A stretch of DNA of 60,545 bases, counting the filler, from Platydemus manokwari (lineage: Eukaryota), in NCBI GenBank assembly GCA_037951405.1. It is 5 parts of 5 records of this genome, joined end to end, with 100 filler letters (N's around TTAATTAATTAA, not from the genome) between each part and the next. Parts side by side here need not be neighbours in the genome. Positions count along the whole stretch, not along the records: positions 1 to 13,018 come from JBBMOY011879166.1; 4 more parts are not named here. One strand, given 5' to 3'. Positions 1-13,018 of this stretch are shown in pieces. How positions within the stretch are numbered: position 1 is the stretch's first letter; each line of letters begins with the position of its first letter. Under the pieces are notes generated by a model. It did not search any database and was not told the DNA's origin. It saw only the letters and a list, made by a program, of their open reading frames with translations. The translations under genes were made by a program, and so were the position numbers.

Positions 1-78
1 ATAATAATATTACAATAACAATAATAATGATATAATAATAATAATATTATTATTAATAATCATAAAATTAATTCTTAC

Positions 79-3000
79 CATTTTTTTCAGTCGTCAACTT
101 ATCTGCATTGGAACAATTGAAAATTTCGGATTTATCTGATTTATTGTAATAATGCACCTTCACCAAACTGTTGATGTCCATTTCTTGTTTAAAGACAGCC
201 ATCTGTTGAATATATTACGCAATTACAGCCAGCTATGATTATATTATTATGATCATATATATATGTGTACAATAATATATGAAAACAAGTTCGATAAATG
301 ATCTTTTATTGTGATAAATATTACCAAATCTGATATCGATCATAATTAATGAGAATAGATGAATTTTGGTAATGGTGTTTTATCAATTAATAAATGTGTT
401 ATTCTCATAGAGAGAACCTGTGCTAATTAGGTAGATTGTGTTGTTATTCAATTTAATAATAAATCTAAACCAAACCTTGAACCCTGGACTCTCGATACCA
501 TATTAATAATATTATTGTGATAAATAAATGATGAAGGATTGATGAAACACAAATGCTCATGGAGAATAATTACATCATACATCAATAATTGTTCTCTAGT
601 TATCTTTTAAATCAATTAACAGATCGATTATAAATTTATACCAAGCGGGAAATTCCCCAAAAAAGGTGTATCATGATAACTAGGAGCAGACAACTTTGAA
701 AATCGTTATTGAACTATGATATGTGTTTGATATCGTTTACGCTAAGATGTTAGCACTTAAATAAATTCGATAGTTTACGCAATTGACCACCATATTTTCA
801 CCGGTCGATTTCCAATTCTTATCCAACTACATTCCACGGTGATTTTTCGTTTGAAAAATATATTTGTTTGTGTTCTGTAATACCAATCTACTGAAATTGT
901 TATAGAGATGTTTTCTCAGCGCTCTCTTAACGTGCTTGCTGATTTTGAACTTTAAGCAGCGCGATTTATTTAAAAAAAAAAACTGAAACCATACGCACAT
1001 CGTAATCACATCATCATCATCATCATCATCATCAACATCAACAGCAGTAGTAGTAGTAGCAGCAGCGTTACAAGTTTGTTTATCAAAAATATATTAAATG
1101 TGTAATATCGGAATTTTTGAATTTCTCTATTCATGATAACAAAAAAATCAATTCATTGGAAAAAAAATCAATGAAACCAATGAAATTAATTCGTTCATAG
1201 AACAAAATTGATTATGAAAATAATATTCGAATTTATTTTCCTCCAATATTTTCAAAGGAGGTGTGTATGTGTGTGTTTATGGGAAAAAAATAATAATGAG
1301 TAAATCAAGGAAATTCGATTGAAATTCCTTTGAAATTTTGACAACACAATTAAAATGGTTTATCGATAAAACTTTCCAAACATCGCCATGCAATTCCGCA
1401 TTCGTTTTCGAGATGCCAAAGATTACTTAATTAATTTCAGATCGAATGCTAAGATTTTACATTTATTATTGGATGAATGAGAAATTATCGAACAACCTCC
1501 AGGGATTATGATTATAATGGAAGAAATAAATGAAAATTTAGGGATTGATTTTTAATTGATCCATTATTTTAAGGGGGTATCACAAATGCTTGTTTGATTA
1601 TGGGTTTTGTTTTTAAACTTGTTCTAATTATCATTGATTTCTTTTATGATTGGATGGGGTCAGTAAATGTGCTTGTTTAAATTTCGAAACTATTTCATCG
1701 ATTTATCTACAAAATCTATTGATATTTGACCTGTGTGTTTATAAGATGATTAGATAAAATTACAACTAACATGGATACTGTTTTTCTGGACATGGAAGTG
1801 ATCCAAAACATCAATATATCGTCTGAACACAGATCCACAAGGCTTACATTCGAAACCCGTAATAACTTTCTCGTCCTTGAAATTATTGTTGGTCTCCAGT
1901 GATTTTTTCCAAATGTGGAAAGAATTGGCGATTTTCTGGTTGATTTGGTGATCACTGCTGTCGACATGAAGTCGCAATTTGTGAGCTGTGGAAAACGTAG
2001 CTCGACACAGACTGCAGTGAATACTTATCAAAGACGTTTGTTCCGTTACCATTTGGAGCATTATTTTATTAGCATTTTCTATCCCTCCTTCTCCAGCGTG
2101 CGCCAACAACTGAAGTTTCTGCTGATGCTTTTCAGTTTTGAAATGAAGAAGAAAATTTGCTTTGATTCGTGTTTTATAACCATCCAACATGCACACGTGT
2201 TCTAATTCTGCGCCAGATGCTCCGTCCATACTTGCTCGCACGACTTTACTAACTTCAGAATTGCTCGGTAAGGGTCGCGGTCGTTCAGCATGGTCGAGGA
2301 TGATTTCGATATCGGAATGAGAATAACTATGACAAATCTCACATTTGAAAATGGCCATATTTGTAAGACCGCTTTCAATGGGTAACCCGATTGCTGATGA
2401 TTCTTTCGTTTGATCGCTACTGTGAATGGTCGGCCAATTTGAAGGAAACGGGTTGGCCTTAATGTTAGAGAAAAAGTCATTTTGAGCTCGAGAAATCAAT
2501 GTGTCCAATATGTGCAGCTGTGGTAGAGATCCAAGAGTCGGTGAGGGATCTTGATTATGTAAATGACCTTTATGTTCATTTTGGTCGTGCTCTCGTTGAT
2601 TGTTCCTGTGCTTTTCTGATTGAAAATGAATGTGTAAGTTTCCTTTGGTTACGGTTTTATAATTGCAAATGTGACATCGGTATTCTCTAGACGCTGCTGC
2701 AATCGGTCGATTCGTACACCGATTAATTGGGGTATTAGAGCCTTGATGATTTAATCTGGTGTGTTCTTCAAGTTCGACTGTCGATGTAAATACGGAATCA
2801 CAATTCGTGCATACAATTGTGCAAGGTGATGTAGCGGTGGTCCAACTGGGTAAAATAGACAAGGATGGCGACGATTGAGATTGATCAACATCTCTACGAT
2901 AAGCCATTTGATCGAAATTTGGAACAATAAATGGTATTGAGACCGGCAATTGCGTTCCCAACCAATCAACATGAGTAAATCTATTCACGATGCACTCAGC

Positions 3001-3618
3001 TTCATTTTCATATTGCGCTTGCAGTACAACTGCATTACTTCCAATCTGTCCCCATTCTTCATCACTCACTGTCCATTTATGTTGTTCAATTGCATGTTGG
3101 CGACAATCCGTTTCATTCCACATTCTGATTCCACATTCGATGCAGAACATCAAGTTCGTTTCAGTAGAGGATTTGATCACCGTGTTTATGGTTTCCATCA
3201 ACTGTTTCGATACTGTACACACAGCCTGTCTCGACTCATCGGTTTCGGAATATTGCTCATCAACCAATAACTCAAAATCGATTCCACTATTTCCTCGTTT
3301 AGAATATCCATAAATCAATACGTCAAATTTGAAATTTTCATTGATTGCACTTTGTCGACTTTTAACACAATCGTAATCGATTGTATTCATGAATTCTTCT
3401 ATTTTGTCAATGCAAAAATTGGCATTGACATCCTGGAGTATTGCACAAATATTCAATCGATATTCTTTATTGCTTAAAATGAATGTCTTCAATAATTGAC
3501 TATCAACTGATAGAGCTTCTACAATGGCATTCGAATTGCCACCAATGCAGCCGGTTTTATCAGAATTATGAACACTGATTTGAGTCGAGCAAGGTATATT
3601 TGAAGTGTCAAATGACAT
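79..3618 (-). CDS. zfhx: ZFHX3/ZFHX4 (zfh2/ATBF1)-like multi-zinc-finger transcription factor, 5' portion (gene continues past window start)
   Basis: ORF 1750-3618 has C2H2/matrin-like fingers typical of the ZFHX N-terminus (CHICNYKTVTKGNLHIHFQSEKH; CMLDGYKTRIKANFLLHFKTEKHQQK; CSLCRATFSTAHKLRLH). Coding exon 3618-1771 ends at CAT|GTTAGT (phase 0). Next exon 202-79 (ttcaacag|ATGGCT...AATG|gtaag) is open in phase 0: MAVFKQEMDINSLVKVHYYNKSDKSEIFNCSNADKLTTEKN. No homeodomain is seen within the window. Confidence 0.85.
1008..1066. repeat. Compound trinucleotide microsatellite (CAT)n-(CAA/CAG)-(TAG)n-(CAG)n in zfhx intron
   Basis: Directly visible. Confidence 0.85.
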
Positions 3619-3809
3619 AATTATCTAAAATCAATATCATATAAATTATCAAATCCATTGAAAGTTATCGATACAATAAAATAAATATAGAATAAATAAA
3701 ATATAGTGACTAATATATGCATCTATGACTGCTTCAGATATCAGACAAAATTAACAAACAATTATGGAAAACAGAAAAAGTAAAGAAAATATTGAAAATA
3801 GAAACTTAC

Positions 3810-4822
3810 TAGAAATCAATATCAACAAAATAAATGATCTATAAAAATAATAATTAATCGAATATTTAGCTAATTGAAATTATAACGATAGGCTCGCATA
3901 AGTGGATATTTTATAAAATCATCTCCCAATGAGAAAAGAGCTGGTAAACTAGATGGTAGTACAAGCAGAGCTTCCATTCAGTTAATTGCGCGGGTGACTA
4001 TACAGACTGTGTTTGTGTGTCGACCTGTATTGGGGAGATTTTTGGGTGTGTATTAAGTTAGAATCGTGACTGTATGCTCGTGTCTACTAATTACAGTAAC
4101 CAATGCAAATTACATAATTAGTCTCATCAAATCTCTCCAGCTCTGAACCCCGTACGAACAAAAGACAGGAAAGATGAAGCTAATTTGTCTTAGACCGCTT
4201 GGCTGCTTGCTCAAGTACCAGTGGACAATTAATCAAATTTCTCGAGAGCACCCACTTACAGATTGCGATCGCCTTGCCATCTGGTAGCAGTGCACATGCT
4301 CAACCAGATTATCAGTAGCATCTTGTTGTTGTTGTTATTATTATTATTGTTGTTGTCGATGATGTGCTGGTAAAGATGCTGTTTCTGCATCAGCACCAGC
4401 GAAACATCGTTATCGTCATTAGCAGGACTCATTAAAACTCACCGGGCTCGGTATACACAGATTTCTAATGGCAATCAGTTACTCTTATTAACTTAATTTG
4501 CAGTGCCACCAAAACCGAGCCAGCGGCCTACAAATGGCCAAATGCTGATAATCGAAGATTGCTAATTAGTTAGGTAGTGAAATATTCCCAATTAGAATCT
4601 TCCAGCTCTTTTCTCATCGATACAAGAGCCCTCCTGAGATGACCATCTTTGCTCACTAACTTAATTGCGTGTGCCCATCTAGCGTTCCGCTAATTGACTC
4701 AATCGGGTTTTATCTATCTCTACTCAAATATAATTAACTGCTTCTTTCTCACTTCAGAGCTTTTCTAGATCATTTTGTTTTAATTCACTAAACAACTTTT
4801 CTTTTTCCAGAAAACCGAACCA
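3810..4822 (-). other. Predicted non-coding (5' UTR) exon of zfhx containing a structured GC-elevated island
   Basis: Minus-strand acceptor with a pyrimidine tract (gtgattttttctag|, AG at 4824-4823) and donor |gtaagt at 3809. Acceptor ttttag| at 3626-3625 lies 6 nt before the ATG. The spliced junction puts an in-frame TGA just upstream of ATG 3618. No ORF >=60 aa. Predicted from splice motifs only. Confidence 0.45.
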
Positions 4823-7608
4823 CTAGAAAAAATCACATCGAAAAAGGAAAACAAATTCTCCCCAAAACAATTAAGAATCCTTAAAGGTCGTTTTTCTTTT
4901 CGATAAAACCATAAAATCAATACTTTGATTAAAAGAATGATAATAACTCATATGATGCCATTAATAATAATTTCAATATCGAGTAGTCTCAATGATATGA
5001 AATCACCAAACAGTTTTTAATTAAAATGCTAATCAATGGAGATCGATGCTGTGGAGAATTAAAGTAAATTACAGAGGATTTTAATTAAGAGGCCAATGGC
5101 TGTTTATTGAAGCTTGAAAATGCAATTAGTTGTCATGCATGGTTACATCTCCTTATATAGCTACTAAAAAGTAATCAATGGAGAATAAAGATTTCTAATT
5201 ATTCTTTAACTTTGCCATGAAAAAAAAGCCGAAATTAGACTTGATTAGTGATTTGGTCAGTATTATTAGTAAGCTTGGATTATTATGATCTTTTTTCCAG
5301 ATAATATTATCACTGGTCTAATTTTGTTATTGGTAATGAATTTGTGAGAACGAGAGAGAAATCCGTTGAAATTCGCCAGTGAATGTTAACGAAAAAACGA
5401 ATATTTTTTAATAGATTATATTTAATTATATTTAATAATGATTGAGTGTGATTTTGAAACTCATTTTGAAAACCTTGAATAAGCGTTGGTAATTCAAAAA
5501 ATACCACAACATAAAAATCGACCCACGCTTATTACAAACTGATAAACTTGGCCTACAATATTTTTTTTTGATAGTGATTGTCTACACAAGATCAAAAATT
5601 AAGATGTAAATAAATATCGATGAGATTTCTGTAAGAAAAAACGTCACATTATTACAATGATATAAAATGAAAAAGGTCGATATGATTATATAATTATATT
5701 TTATATATATATTTTTTGTTCACACTAATTACAAAACATTATTTCGAAAATTACCACTCTGACATAATTCTTTAAACGTTTCTCTTGGATTTAAATCTTG
5801 AAAAGCCCAAGACATCTTATTTATGGATAAAATATATGTTAACATGTAATCAAGCTACTGACTAATTATATAGTAATATTAACCTTCGGAAATAAAATTT
5901 ATCTATTCATAACGATATTATTCATCAGGGTTTGTCAAATACAAATACAAAATAACGAATTTCATTTCGACATTTTCTACGTACAGATTTCATTTTTTGT
6001 TCTACTACTCACAAGTCGGCTGACAAAATTGAAAAAAAACTTCACGAAAATTAATGTTTGAAAATTTTATTCGACAGAGCAATGGTTGGCGCTCATTATC
6101 AGACGAGTTTTTCTAAAATAAAAGCCTGCTTCATACAAACGTTTGTGTTGATTAATTGTGTTCATAATTTATTGAGTAATCCATCAATCAATATCTTACA
6201 AAAGACGATCAATCAAATTTGATTAGTAATTCTAGTTTGATACCTTTCAATTACAGGTTTGCATGTGCGAAATGGTTTTGTCTTCATTAAAAATGGCTTT
6301 AAGAGTATAATACACCATATATTGGGGGTGGGTGGATATTGGAAAACAAAATATTCGCGAAATATTGTGAAGTTTACGATAATTGAATATACTAACGAAA
6401 TAAATCGATCAAGGTAAAGGTTTCGTTAATTATTGAAAAATTGACGGTGAGTTACGTAATCACATAGTGTTAGGGGGTAAGTCAAAGCTTTTGTTCACTG
6501 AAATAATAAATTGTTAACCTTCGTTTTCGTGAGCATGTGCGCCAGTATGCACAATTTCCCAAACAATTTCAAAACGAATACACTGCAGTGTATGCAGAAT
6601 GTTTGGTATGTATCGATTGATATGTTAAAAACACAAATATTCGGGCAAATTTCTCACTAACCGCTGAATATTTATATATAAACTCTATAATATAATTAAA
6701 TTATAATAACATGGCAAATTATTTAAATACGGGACAGTTGTATCGACACATATCAACCCAAAGATAAATTTAGCACCCATTTGTATGCCGTTAGATCATT
6801 CGAATTTTACTGTCCAATAACACACAAAACATTCCATTCCACAAAACACGTTGGCGAAATGCAACCAATGCCAGGATATTTATTGGAAAAAATTGTGTTC
6901 CATTGACAATGGCAATTGTTTCCATCCTTTCTCATTTCAATCGATGGCCGGTTGGAACGCAACGAAATCGTTTTGAAATATTATTCCCACGATAAACTTG
7001 ACATGCACACAAACCCTGAACCATAACGTGTTTCGTCTCTTAAATTGTGGGATAAATTTTTTCTGGCCAAAATCGATCATAATAAAATATGGATTTAAAA
7101 TCGATAATGTTTAAAATGGAAAATTCCAGTGGATTTCTTTAATCAGGCATTATAATAACTATTGAAAACTATTCATAAACAAACGAGGTTTGGCCTAATT
7201 TGCATAGAAAATGCGAGCTCATTATACAGCCATATTATAATATTAATTTACTAAACAGGAATATTAACCACAAATTAGGCATTTTTTTTAATATTTAGAC
7301 TAATTGCAGTTTTTCTAGCACGAGTTCAGCATTAATTAATCCAACGGAATGGTCAGCAACTAAATGGAACTCAGTGAAAATTTGTAAAGTATATTTACAT
7401 GATCACTCCAATTCTATTTGGTTTATAAATTGTTACAAAACAAAATCTATTTAGATTAATTTAGCTATTCATTAGCGGTGCAATCGGTTCGGTGTGGTAG
7501 AGTTGTTTTTCTAATTTAAAAAACACATGAAAATTCGTGAAATGAAAATGAAAACAAAAACAAAAACTACAATGGCTATTATACGAATTATTCGAAAGAA
7601 AATCTCAC

Positions 7609-8178
7609 CTGTTTTGATAAATAAGTAATCGAAGTCAGCCGTGATAGATATTGAATTGAATATTTTGTATTGATTTTAATTATGAAAGAATTATCAATAA
7701 TTAATGACTATGGCAAATCATAATCCTGCTCATTAAATGCGTGCGAAGCATTAATAGATGGTGTGTGCAAGGCCTAGTCGTACACACCATCAGGACCTGC
7801 TTTATCAGTACCATCGCGATTAGGAGACAAGTTAAAACAAGAAACTTAAAATTAATTATCACTTACAAACATTAGCGACATGAGTCATCAAACATGAATT
7901 TCAACCTTCAACCTCCAATAACACCAGGGTACTTCAGTGTAAAATCTGTGTGGTGTGTGAATACAATCTGCACTCTTGTATCAGGCATTGAGTTCTACAA
8001 TGTCAGTGTGCTTAATAGGAAGCTAATTAACTGTTCGACAATCTTAATGACGATTTGATGGTATGCAAGTCGGTGGATATCAGCATGCAATCATTTCAAT
8101 GTTAGTATATCAATTGCGTGAACACAGACGTTGGGAATCAAAGCTTTGTCTTCGATGGTATACAGTGCAGTACACATG
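7609..8178 (-). other. Predicted upstream non-coding exon of zfhx (second GC-elevated island)
   Basis: Strong donor CAG|GTGAGA at 7608. The island ends at a (TA)n tract at ~8179-8195. 5' boundary unknown. Confidence 0.3.
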
Positions 8179-11100
8179 TATATATATATATATATGAAGG
8201 TATATGTCCAATATGAATGATCAATTATTTATTGAACGAATTATTTTCCTGTGGAGCAACTGGACTCTTTGGAAAGAAAATCTTTTAACGCAATTCCAAG
8301 ACTTAAAATTAAAATAGAAAACGATCTGTTATGATGTTGTAATTATTTTAACATTTCAACACCAACTTTTCCTGGTTTTCGTTGGACAACACCAATCCTG
8401 GTGTTTCATGACTAGATATAAGTCACTGGTTAAACAAATCAATTCTATTAATATAATTAGTGACTTTGATTACATTGTCAAAGTAAATAAAAATGTATAA
8501 ATATGATATAATACAAATGCACACCAAACGATATTTATAAATCAATATAAAATCGACTCTGTCATAAACATATCTATTTACGATATTTCATCACGTTATA
8601 ATAAATAAATATTGTATACACGTCGATATCGATGTTTTATAATCAATATTAAATCAATATTTCTTCATCAATCGATTTGACGTAGGTCCACCAAAAGAAA
8701 ATGTGGTGTTCATTAATTTCTGTCATATCAAATCGATGTGGTGTCTTTATTGATCGATAATTTGACAATTTGGCTATCAAATGTGTCTTTGTGTACATCA
8801 TCAGCCCATAGGTATGCATTGCATATTTGACATGACCAACAACAAAAACATTATTCGCTGTACAGAGTCATCAAATTATGGTTTTTTTTATTGCGGATAG
8901 CTTTCACAGCCAAAATTTTTAATTTTACCTAATCTTTGTTCGGGAATTTTTTTTTAATAACTGATAAAATTTACTGATATAGCTGCTATTAGCCAGTCGT
9001 ATTCGGTTGGTGTTGGAAAGAAAAAACCTACAGGAATTTTTGTTATATAATAAATTACCATAATTTATTAATTGGTCTGTATTGCATATCGGGTTACATC
9101 TTTACGCTGAATTTCTTCAATCGTTTATTTGGAAGATAATTAATTTATGGAGTGGAATTTCGTTAGTTTTATAACGTTTCACAATTATCATTAATGTAGG
9201 CTATTTACACAACCAGAAAAAGAGAATTTTTTCCAGGAAATACGGGATTTTTTTTCGTATTTATTTGATATTGATCGATTAAGTCGAAGGATAAAAGGAG
9301 AAGTAAAGCTACAAGAATTGTAACCGTACTTAGTTCGACTGTTTTTTTACGTTTTCAAGAGGTAAAGCTTTATTAGGAAGTTGATTCTGATACAATAAAT
9401 TAATTTTGGAGTTTATGGGCGAAAACCGATGGCTATATGAAAAAGGGTATTCGAGAAGTTATGTAGTCTTTTATATACAATAATAAAGGCTCTGTAGTAG
9501 TCTTTTGTTTGAAAATTCAGGGGAATTTGTTATATTATTATTCAGAACTGAATGGGAAAAAATATGACCATTTTATGTCCACAAGCGTTTTATCATGAAT
9601 AACAATAGGAAGTTTTGTTGTCAAGGTTAAATTAATTGTTTTAATCTCATGATGATACAGACTTTATGAAAAATATTTACATTATTAGTGGTTTTGTTTG
9701 GTAATCAGACCAAAGAAATCAACAATGTTTGAAGGATACTGGTGTTTTATATGATTATAGTAGTTGTGTTTGATCAAAGGCAATTGATTAAGATATTAGT
9801 TGATGGAACTGCGTGTTCAAATAAAACGAGTTTCCAATTAAAAACTCAAGGATTTGTGATTGTATTTGATTGTTGGAAAAAAATCATTTGAAGAAACTTA
9901 TCCTGGCACGATGGTAATCAAATATTGAGCTGCAATGGATTACATGAAAGTCGTATCTGAAATCATCTGAATACAGGTCATCTAAAATAATAATCTTATA
10001 AAAATCGTTTCATTGAGACGAGGGAAAAATACATTCTTCTGACAACATAATATTCCTGAGTTCATTGAAAGGAAATATGTTAGATATTGTAGATATGGCA
10101 CCAAAATTCTATCAAGATAATTTCTCAGAATTCAGTTATGAGAATCAACTAAACTGATTGAAGTGGTTGTATGAACCAATGAGTGAATTTTGGAATATAG
10201 GATTTGAGGTTCGATTCGAAACGGAAACGAAAGTGGTCTATCGATGAACGATCCGTGGGAAATATCAATGATTCTGTCATTTGCCCCTCATAATATTCCC
10301 AAAACCAATTTCACAGAAATTATAGTGAAAGGCGTTGAAAAGGATAGTTTTACCCAATGAGTTGGTTCTGCAACATGATTTACGAGAACCTGTTAGACTT
10401 ATTAATTGAATTTGATTTGCTATTATTTATCATGATTTTGAAGTTCCGAAAAATGTGAAATAAACTTCATATTTGTTTGCAAATCTTGAAAACTATTTTA
10501 AATCGTCAAACATTCTTCAATATGCACTCGAATACTTTGTTGAATATCTCTAAAATTAATGGTAGTATTATAATCCCAATGTTTTGATATTGAACTTATT
10601 TACCACAAGTTTTACTGTTGTAGTTCTCCTTGAATTTGCTTCCAGTAAATATAGTTAAATTGGAATTTTGACCAATTTAAAAAAAATCTGGAATTCGATT
10701 TTTAATAAAAAAAAACTTACATAAAAAATCGTCTCGCCCTTTGGCCCGAAACCATTTAAAATGAGATCATTTTTTCTGATCTGACTTTAAATTAATTAAG
10801 GATATCATAATTATTTACTGATCTTACATGAAATATAATACATCACTCAAGCTGCAGTTTTATTTTAACAATTTTTAATATTTATAGCCCACCTTACAGT
10901 GCATGGAACATTTCATTTCTCAGGAGTTGTTTACCTTCTTACAGCCTTATTTTTCCACGATTGTAATTTCAAGGGAAATTACATTTTATTTAAAATTAAA
11001 TTTTTCTTGTAAAATAATCTTTATAAATACGCATTACTATCAATGGTTTAAGATATTCTACACCGTCAGTTTCTTTGATTCAGCTAAACATAGATGAATC

Positions 11101-12009
11101 AATCTGACCATTTAAAATATAGTTCAATTTCCCAACGGTGAAATTATAGCCATTGCAATGTGGATTCCAGTGCCAGTAGAAGAAAATATCTAAAAGGGAC
11201 TGCTAACTTCATCGAATTCTTTTGTGTGCTTGAATGACTAAAACAAAACCATTGCTTTATCAATTATTTTACTATTTCAGATGTTCTATTGTCGAGTTGA
11301 AATAAATATTGATAAGAACCTTGTGGTTGAGTCAATTATGACATCTAAGTTCCTTTCATGTAGGTTTGATCGGAATAAGAACCTTTAAAAAGCCATATTT
11401 CTAAAAATACAACCAAATAACGCGTAGCATTAATGGATTCAAAATTGTTTATATTTTTGCGTTGGGATCAAATTTTTTTTATCAATTATTTCATATGCGT
11501 TGCAAGGTGTAAACTGAAATTGGAACGGATTGTGGATAGGAGTTACGAATTAAGAATTTTGGACAAAAAAATGTCAGTATTGATTTGTGTGTGTGTGTGT
11601 GTTTATGAATTACAATAATTACAGCACTCGATCACAATAAAAATGGTAATATGGATTTTATTATCAGCCGGAATTTTCGATATAGCGGATATCACGGTAT
11701 AACAACAACAAAACGGTGTCGAATGTAATTTGTAAAATAATCAAACTATCACGAGGATCGATGGAAGCAATGCCATGGACATACAGAGTTAAATTTCAAA
11801 CTGAAATTTTTCGTTTCGAAATTTAAGCGCAAATTGAAAATAATTAGTAAATAATTTTTAATTAAATTAATTGATAAGCCATAGTTTTTAGGTTGATGAA
11901 ATATTTTGAATAAATAAATAATTAATCAACTATTTAGATAAGCAACTAAACAATTTTAGAATTAATATAGAATGAGCGGCAAAGTTTAAGTATTATTTAT
12001 AGCAATATA

Positions 12010-12265
12010 TTAAGTATAAAAATATAAATCTATGGAAATATTATTTTATAAAAATATCTATTTATAAATACATTAATTTACAAAAATATTGATTTGTAAA
12101 AAATGTAATTTTAAAAATATTGATTTAAGAAAATATTGATTTTAAAAATATAGATTTATGAAAATATAAATTTTAAAAATATTAATTTATATTGATATTA
12201 ATTATAAAAATTTTAATGTTTAGAAATACTAGTCCATGAAAATTTAATTTGTAAAAATATTAATA
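12010..12265. repeat. Degenerate AT-rich minisatellite (~15-16 bp unit, AAAATATTGATTT[T/A]..)
   Basis: Repeated aaaatattgattt/aaaatatagattt/aaaatattaattt units. Confidence 0.6.
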
Positions 12266-12938
12266 TTAGTAATTCAAATAATGATAATAATACCCAGTGT
12301 CTCAATAATTAAAATGACTTCAATAATAATAATGAATCACTGATAAAATATTCCAGATTTTCAAACTCTAATTATAGCATTCAACAAATTTTTAAACGCA
12401 ATTTCAAAATTCTAAATAATTAGAATGACCGAAAATATATGGCGTTCATATCTTGTACAGGTTCACATTTTCATAATATTTTCAAAATTCGATTCATTAT
12501 TAAATAGATAAATGGATCTTATCGGAATACTGAAAACATAAACAATATTTTCAAACTAAAACCTTATATTAATATAATGATATTCCAATAAATGTATACT
12601 ACGATTGCCAGCCATTAATTTTAGAGAAAACTAAGCCCCCTAATTCTTGTTTTGGAAAAACTGCGAACAGGTGCTATTCATGCAATTAATTGAAGATAAC
12701 GTTTTAATCTCAGATGGCATTAATGATAATGGGCTGATTTTTCTTGATTGGGATTTCATTAAAGATGATTAACATATCAAGTAGCATTATCAGCCCTGTT
12801 CAAATATATTTTCCAAACTGATGAATTACACACCAGCAATCTTCAATGAGGCAAACAAATGAACGATTCTACAGCAATTCCAAAGGAGTGTTAACAATGA
12901 ATTTTATGACTATTTTTTATAATTAAAATTTAAATAAC

Positions 12939-12941
<3 letters not shown>

Positions 12942-12997
<56 letters not shown>

Positions 12998-13018
12998 GTT
13001 ATTGTTATTATTATTATT
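12942..13018. repeat. (ATT)n microsatellite abutting assembly gap
   Basis: Directly visible. Confidence 0.95.

Follow-up and report, generated by a model that had tools for sequence, protein, structure and literature searches.

A motif-dense, GC-richer island upstream of a zfhx-type gene in Platydemus manokwari: a candidate promoter-proximal cis-regulatory module

A kilobase of single-copy, non-coding DNA lies just ahead of the first coding exon of a zfhx-type (zinc-finger homeobox) gene in the flatworm Platydemus manokwari and most likely serves that gene as an ordinary regulatory or leader region. We tentatively read it, with somewhat less than even confidence, as a promoter-proximal cis-regulatory module that may overlap the 5' leader. 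This reading draws on the orientation-free recurrence of short motifs in a single-copy, GC-richer block directly upstream of a homeobox gene. A role as RNA would be bound to one strand and the motifs are free of orientation, which points to a cluster of binding sites at the level of DNA. Both strands of the island also fold more stably than expected, the effect being weaker on the minus strand, the one to which a zfhx leader would belong. An interpretation of the island as a functional RNA is unsupported by the tests run.

The gene and the island upstream of it

The window comprises 60,545 nucleotides, made up of five parts of five records of assembly GCA_037951405.1 joined with filler. The features described here (Table 1) all lie in its first part, the contig JBBMOY011879166.1 (positions 1 to 13,018). 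This contig is AT-rich, with a GC content of 0.23–0.33 over most of its length, and its two GC-richer blocks are the coding ORF and the island.

The coding block (1750-3618) is a minus-strand ORF of 622 codons. Only weak C2H2 matches were obtained for its 622-residue product with Pfam, and a PDB sequence search with the same query did not resolve the protein family. An exhaustive HMMER search identified 149 relatives at E ≤ 1e-10, many of them 2300–3900 residues long, and each of the three long relatives sampled contained four homeodomains and PF24056 (zf-C2H2_ZFHX3). The ORF was also collinear with residues 473-757 of a 2734-residue four-homeodomain protein (BLASTP 2e-24 over 311 residues). 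Together, the 149 relatives, the domain content of the sampled long ones and the collinear alignment support the name zfhx, which a sequence-only reading of this DNA had given to the gene. The ORF below the island belongs to the ZFHX gene class by collinear similarity, with the homeodomain exons lying outside the window.

Two close orthologues (90% and 81% identity) share their start methionine with the ORF. Past a shared ...SIH at the proposed donor, one orthologue diverges and the other stops, which argues for a donor near 1770 and for 1771-3624 as the first coding exon. Looked up as exact sequences, neither the window ORF nor the 81% orthologue (P0002) gave a match, and no transcript-derived orthologue was present among the orthologues and relatives retrieved. 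The metagenome-derived P0002 stops precisely with the final codon of this exon (...SIH); a metagenome scan for a contig carrying it was blank. Trinucleotide runs of the (ATC)n/(CAT)n and (CAG)n-like types were observed at 996-1060, within the intron that follows the coding exon.

Upstream of the gene, the core of the island reached a GC content of 0.415, compared with 0.23–0.30 on either side and a background of ~0.27, and the island began 192 nt from the ATG at 3618. The raised GC and the position just upstream of the zfhx start codon, both part of the sequence-only reading, were borne out. The rise in GC tapered over ~80–120 nt before both proposed splice sites, while the edge of the coding exon was sharp at 3625. 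The island had likewise been described as lacking an ORF, and no open stretch above 60 codons was found in it on either strand. Its longest ORF, at 4256-4432 on the minus strand, has 58 codons and contains a run of ten asparagines contributed by the microsatellite, and its stop codon overlaps the GTAAGT at 4259. A word search with this 58-residue ORF found no relative. A missed coding exon was rejected on the absence of any frame above 60 codons and because splicing at 4259 would leave the 58-residue ORF in a different frame from the ATG exon.

Within the rest of the 911-Mb assembly, matches were confined to the microsatellite of the island, which is otherwise single copy. The island is therefore non-coding, non-repetitive DNA near a gene, as a cis-regulatory module is. 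When the island was searched with the Rfam covariance models, no family matched; the sole hit was CrcZ on the microsatellite, at 21 bits, far below the gathering threshold of 95, and a known RNA family was rejected on this basis. The "many upstream AUGs" of the sequence-only reading turned out to be at chance level, with 16 observed vs. 19.8 expected from composition, neither enriched nor depleted. Two further GTRAGT sites were found within the island, at 4442 and 4259. Elsewhere in the contig, a tandem array of ~16.5 copies of a 16-nt AT-only unit, ATATTAATTTATAAAA, occupies 11991-12264 in a stretch with a GC content of 0.14. The contig ends, at 12942-13018 and 1-65, carry (TTA)n and (ATA)n microsatellites, which probably explain the assembly break at these ends.

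The island had been reported as bracketed by minus-strand splice signals, and a donor-like CTA/GTAAGT at 3809 and an acceptor-like tttttctag/TGG at 4823 are indeed present; a third splice-like word, the acceptor ttttag/ATAATTATG, lies at 3625 (slashes mark the proposed cuts). A genomic contig of a related species (L008, 2849 nt) was reached from the orthologue P0001. It is the sole related-species DNA compared and reaches only 3 nt into the island, starting with ccaGTAAGTTTa 3 nt before the donor. The GTAAGTTT donor motif of 3809 was seen again at the start of L008, which aligned across the whole 185-nt interval to the acceptor, with both intron ends aligned. Identity was 0.64 in the putative intron; third codon positions reached 0.54, a value that places neutral divergence near saturation, and the downstream intron 0.55. 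The higher identity of the putative intron makes the 3809 donor and the 3625 acceptor plausibly real. Given the recurrence of the donor motif in L008, a non-coding exon upstream of the ATG exon and joined to it via the 3809 donor is plausible.

A 48-residue ORF in the L008 intron, used as a query, retrieved L008 itself and no other contig. Inside the putative intron, at 3745-3767 on the minus strand, a block of ~23 nt (GTTTGTTAATTTTGTCTGATATC) is identical to L008 at 20 of 23 positions; set against a neutral identity of ~54%, it may mark a branch-point region or a control element of the intron. P0002 ends at an exon border and L008 starts next to one, which could possibly reflect mixed spliced and unspliced templates in those assemblies.

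Table 1. Features of the zfhx-type gene and of the island upstream of it (positions along the window)
Feature	Position	Strand	Basis or remark
First coding exon of zfhx-type gene	1771..3624	minus	ATG 3618-3616; CAT/GTTAGT donor near 1770
Putative intron, 185 nt	3625..3809	minus	GTAAGT donor 3809; ttttag acceptor 3625, 6 nt before ATG
Island as first delimited	3810..4822	none	Single copy, non-coding; minus-strand splice-like signals at both edges
GC-richer core, proposed cis-regulatory module	~3890..4720	none	Composition; dense short motifs in both orientations
TATAAAA, candidate TATA box	3909..3915	minus	Gene-proximal edge of GC-rich core
Left arm of perfect 16-nt inverted repeat, ATGAGAAAAGAGCTGG	3929..3944	none	Sequence
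Two opposed homeodomain-type cores, ACTAATTA / TAATTAGT	4086..4122	none	Stem when folded in silico
Third copy of the 8-mer core of the 16-mer, CCAGCTCT / AGAGCTGG	4137..4144	none	"Switch" partner of the sequence-only reading
Short stem on CTGGTA / ACCAG	4279..4309	none	Overlaps E-box-like CCATCTGG
(TTG)n(TTA)n microsatellite	4323..4356	none	Sole part of island with matches elsewhere in genome
Imperfect palindrome, 69 nt, strongest local hairpin	4352..4420	none	Arms with GCTGGTA / ACCAGC
87-nt hairpin	4440..4526	minus	Fold; better on minus thanks to G-U pairs
Right arm of perfect 16-nt inverted repeat	4602..4617	none	Flanks unrelated to those of left arm

Short motifs in both orientations and the regulatory reading

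The recurrence of short words in the island was compared with dinucleotide shuffles after removal of the microsatellite. Twenty-nine 8-mers occurred at least twice vs. 12.7 ± 4.7 in the shuffles, and four occurred at least three times vs. a shuffle mean of 0.15, a count that none of 500 shuffles reached. The words seen three times, with both orientations counted, were AGAGCTGG, ACTAATTA, TAACTTAAT, and TGAGAAA. The sum of squared 6-mer counts was 1410 vs. 1223 ± 38, with the island value reached in 0 of 1000 shuffles. The coding exon showed no excess of 8-mers, and other non-coding stretches showed a mild one.

The top 6-mers were TAATT variants, and occurrences were nearly equal between the strands. 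Ranked only after inspection of the data, the leading words were CTAATT (7 observed, 0.70 expected), TAATTG (5, 0.75), TAATTA (4, 0.35), TTAATT (5, 0.86), CTGGTA (4, 0.34), and CCATCT (4, 0.46). Roughly eleven homeodomain-type TAATT cores lie in the GC-richer core, and such cores ran at 2 to 3.5 times expectation over 3500-5500, that is, past the proposed acceptor at 4823. Short motifs are over-represented here whatever their orientation, which is a property of cis-regulatory modules.

The same words account for much of the apparent secondary structure. The arms of the 16-mer are made up of AGAGCTGG, and the left arm runs into GCTGGTA, a copy of CTGGTA at 3939-3945. The 4086/4115 stem is made up of CTAATTA, and CTGGTA / ACCAG contributes to the 4279-4309 stem and to the arms of the palindrome at 4352-4420. 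Words that recur in opposite orientation would thus produce four of the five stems as by-products.

Under the regulatory reading, the island would be the non-coding promoter-proximal region of a zfhx-type transcription-factor gene, most likely acting as DNA. The TAATT cores, CTGGTA, CCATCT, AGAGCTGG, and TAACTTAAT would be clustered candidate sites for homeodomain and other factors. Oppositely oriented motifs would pair in silico on either strand and so give rise to the nested "stems" and to a modest fold excess on both strands, and the isolated 16-nt repeat may be a composite site that was duplicated, or else a small, neutral inverted duplication. Transcription would probably begin at or within the gene-proximal part of the island, giving a short non-coding first exon that would run to the conserved GTAAGT donor at 3809 and be joined to the acceptor 6 nt before the ATG. 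The candidate TATA box would place the start near 3880 and predict a first exon of ~70 nt ending at 3810; TATAAAA occurs ten times on the minus strand in 13 kb, which makes it weak evidence for a TATA box. What we infer in this model is the binding of factors, the place where transcription starts and the use of the splice sites. If the model is right, the result would be an ordinary yet usable annotation, a candidate control module for a flatworm zfhx gene, which would come with a concrete list of motif sites and a likely short non-coding first exon.

Several observations count against the regulatory reading. Two hairpins, 4440-4526 and 4080-4128, are clearly favoured on the sense strand via G-U pairs, which argues against a model in DNA only. 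The 16-mer exceeds the typical length of a binding site and shows no enrichment in the rest of the genome, its near-matches numbering 32 vs. 23 for a control word. The GC of the island, at the level of a coding exon, and the good flanking splice signals also fit a transcribed exon. The roles of regulatory module and transcribed exon are not mutually exclusive.

The transcribed-exon account in its simplest form is a plain long 5' leader exon with no special structure, in which the island would be transcribed, entirely or for the most part, on the minus strand and spliced from 3810 to 3624, and in which the 16 upstream AUGs would dampen translation, as is ordinary for developmental regulators with long leaders. 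Exon-like GC speaks for it, as do the acceptor-like site at 4823 and the consensus CTA/GTAAGT donor at 3809 with the acceptor near the ATG, the last two aligned in L008 despite near-saturated neutral divergence. Yet the AUGs are at the chance level given above, the edges of the GC block do not coincide with the proposed splice sites, and the island contains the additional GTRAGT sites at 4442 and 4259. An internal non-coding exon of 1013 nt is unusual and needs another exon upstream, and a role as RNA leaves the orientation-independent motifs unexplained. We consider this account unlikely, though it is compatible with overlapping regulatory DNA.

The 16-nt inverted repeat and the folding of the island

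The perfect 16-nt inverted repeat on which the sequence-only reading was built was found, as was the alternative 8-nt partner of its left arm, a copy of the CCAGCTCT core. None of 2000 dinucleotide shuffles of the island reached a 16-nt inverted repeat, the longest being 14 nt. The exact 16-mer occurs twice in the 911-Mb genome, both times in the island, and its genome-wide near-matches (≤1 mismatch) were no more frequent than those of the reversed word taken as the control (32 vs. 23). Similarity between the arms stops at 16 nt, with sharp edges and unrelated flanks (...TCCCA and CGATA...), and no target-site duplication was found around the 16-mers. These three features indicate that the 16-mer is not a transposon end. 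By our estimate, chance would be expected to supply hundreds of 16-nt inverted pairs within 1 kb in a scan of this size, so the repeat on its own is little proof. Outside low-complexity sequence, the contig contains only one other inverted repeat of at least 13 nt, a perfect 16-nt palindrome (ATACACTGCAGTGTAT) at 6578-6593, 2 kb upstream of the island.

The chance estimate is one of the points in favour of a neutral origin, in which the island is neutral upstream sequence, its 16-nt repeat arose by chance or as a small inverted duplication through template switching, and the other stems are ordinary. The sharp edges and unrelated flanks of the repeat fit this account, and local fold scores resemble those in the rest of the contig. 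It is, however, at odds with a GC of 0.41 in a background of 0.27, with a motif recurrence far above that of shuffles, and with a location just ahead of the first coding exon in a developmental regulator gene, and we regard it as improbable.

Fold stability was assessed on 1-kb folds compared with shuffles within 100-nt blocks, which keep local composition (n = 40), and separately with whole-sequence shuffles. Against block shuffles, the island scored z = −1.97 on the minus (sense) strand, with 2 of 40 shuffles as stable, and z = −3.49 on the plus strand, with 0 of 40 as stable. Against whole-sequence shuffles, the values were −2.26 (minus) and −3.92 (plus, 0 of 20 as stable). Control kilobases gave z = +0.4 (minus) and +1.1 (plus) for the coding exon and −0.3 (minus) and −0.2 (plus) for upstream DNA. 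Since the island beats shuffles and the control kilobases do not, the excess of self-complementarity is real. Scrambling one repeat arm cost 5 kcal/mol on the minus strand and 10 kcal/mol on the plus strand, leaving estimated residual z values of about −1.3 and −2.1, respectively, relative to the block-shuffle distributions. The shuffle baseline was −241 kcal/mol for the minus strand vs. −226 kcal/mol for the plus strand, so the advantage of the plus strand in z is partly a baseline effect. At the scale of 200-nt windows, the best z in the island was −2 to −2.5, and the coding exon and other parts of the contig reached the same. The sequence-only description of the island as heavily base-paired is thus borne out only in part. 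The island folds better than shuffles on both strands, but the excess is weak in the sense direction (z of about −2) and stronger in the antisense direction (about −3.5).

The individual stems named in the sequence-only reading were largely recovered, and all scores for local hairpins are inflated by their having been picked after looking at the data. The words ACTAATTA and TAATTAGT were found at 4086-4093 and 4115-4122 and form the stem claimed for them; the surrounding hairpin (4080-4128) scored z = −2.7 on the minus strand and −1.2 on the plus strand. The 4279-4309 stem is present but not continuous, as ATCTGGT+AGCA pairs with TGCT+CA+ACCAGAT around a 2-nt bulge (CA), and the 4274-4314 hairpin scored −1.4 (minus) and −2.6 (plus). 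The hairpin of ~60 nt noted at 4357-4415 was found within the imperfect palindrome, which folded equally on both strands (−25.0 kcal/mol, z = −4.9 minus; −26.0 kcal/mol, z = −4.3 plus). The words GGCTCGGT and ACCGAGCC pair at 4445-4452 and 4514-4521 and, just as described, the inner stem at 4463-4473 / 4504-4514 closes on the minus strand only, via three G-U pairs. The 87-nt hairpin that contains them reached −27.7 kcal/mol (z = −3.2) on the minus strand and −20.0 kcal/mol (z = −1.6) on the plus strand.

These folds bear most directly on the proposal, made in the sequence-only reading, of a structured zfhx leader RNA, in which a 16-bp helix would close ~660 nt of nested hairpins that control translation through an IRES or a switch, as reported for ZEB2. 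The minimum-energy fold of the island does include the 16-bp helix, the 4440-4526 and 4080-4128 hairpins favour the sense strand (z −3.2 vs. −1.6 and −2.7 vs. −1.2) and are the one specific point in support of the proposal, and the island folds better than shuffles where the control kilobases do not. Against these points, the sense strand reaches no more than a z of about −2, or an estimated −1.3 once one repeat arm is scrambled, and antisense scores better, the 200-nt windows of the island are no better than those of the coding exon, no Rfam family matches, and the hairpins were selected post hoc. A helix that spans 657 nt is also weakly favoured kinetically. The sense-specific fold stability of a ZEB2-like structured 5' UTR was not found, and with the upstream AUGs at chance level as well, the claim of a specially structured leader with translational control or an IRES did not hold up; we judge it very improbable. 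The idea would be moderately interesting if true, and no test here favours it. Because clusters of binding sites in both orientations imitate nested stems, any fold excess needs checking on each strand before a structured RNA is put forward.

The stronger fold excess of the plus strand (z between −3.5 and −3.9, matched in stability by none of 40 block shuffles and none of 20 whole-sequence shuffles) and its estimated residual of about −2.1 after arm scrambling would instead suit a plus-strand non-coding RNA, a divergent or upstream-antisense transcript running from near the zfhx promoter, 3810 to 4822. The two most asymmetric hairpins, however, favour the minus strand, and the stronger z owes something to the baseline difference (−241 kcal/mol for minus shuffles vs. 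−226 kcal/mol for plus), and this account appears more doubtful still. The combined proposal that the two genome-unique 16-mers pair in RNA, be it that of the zfhx leader or of a divergent transcript from the plus strand, and enclose ~660 nt as a domain that, with the sense-favoured G-U hairpins at 4440-4526 and 4080-4128, gates zfhx translation or splicing, is the most doubtful of the RNA proposals. A MITE or foldback transposon relic with the 16-mers as terminal inverted repeats is practically refuted, since the ~690-nt unit that they bracket is single copy, the check for a multi-copy family matched nothing elsewhere in the genome beyond the microsatellite, the 16-mer occurs nowhere else and its near-matches are at control level, there is no target-site duplication, and terminal similarity does not extend beyond 16 nt.

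Comparison with known systems

The island resembles a MITE or foldback element in having two inverted terminal words around a few hundred bases, and differs in being single copy, with arms of 16 nt only, unrelated flanks and no target-site duplication. Its 69-nt hairpin at 4352-4420 is similar to a pre-miRNA in energy (−25 to −26 kcal/mol, z below −4 on both strands), whereas a 6-nt asymmetric bulge, the lack of an Rfam miRNA match and the lack of paralogues set it apart.

The 5' UTR of ZEB2 (SIP1), to which the sequence-only reading likened the island, contains an IRES in a retained intron and is controlled by a natural antisense transcript. The island shares with it a long non-coding stretch with upstream AUGs and flanking splice signals, placed before a zinc-finger homeobox coding exon. 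The two differ in that the structure of the island is not specific to the sense strand; moreover, ZEB and ZFHX are different families.

Homotypic-cluster enhancers of developmental transcription-factor genes are similar to the island in several respects, as it is non-coding, single copy and upstream of zfhx, with TAATT cores in both orientations. A perfect 16-nt inverted repeat is not usual in such enhancers and the island has one. For zfhx3 of Schmidtea mediterranea, a lox5a/b (Hox) footprint has been predicted within an enhancer-like stretch that lies upstream of the gene body (PMC9522251), which offers an analogy to the candidate module in kind only.
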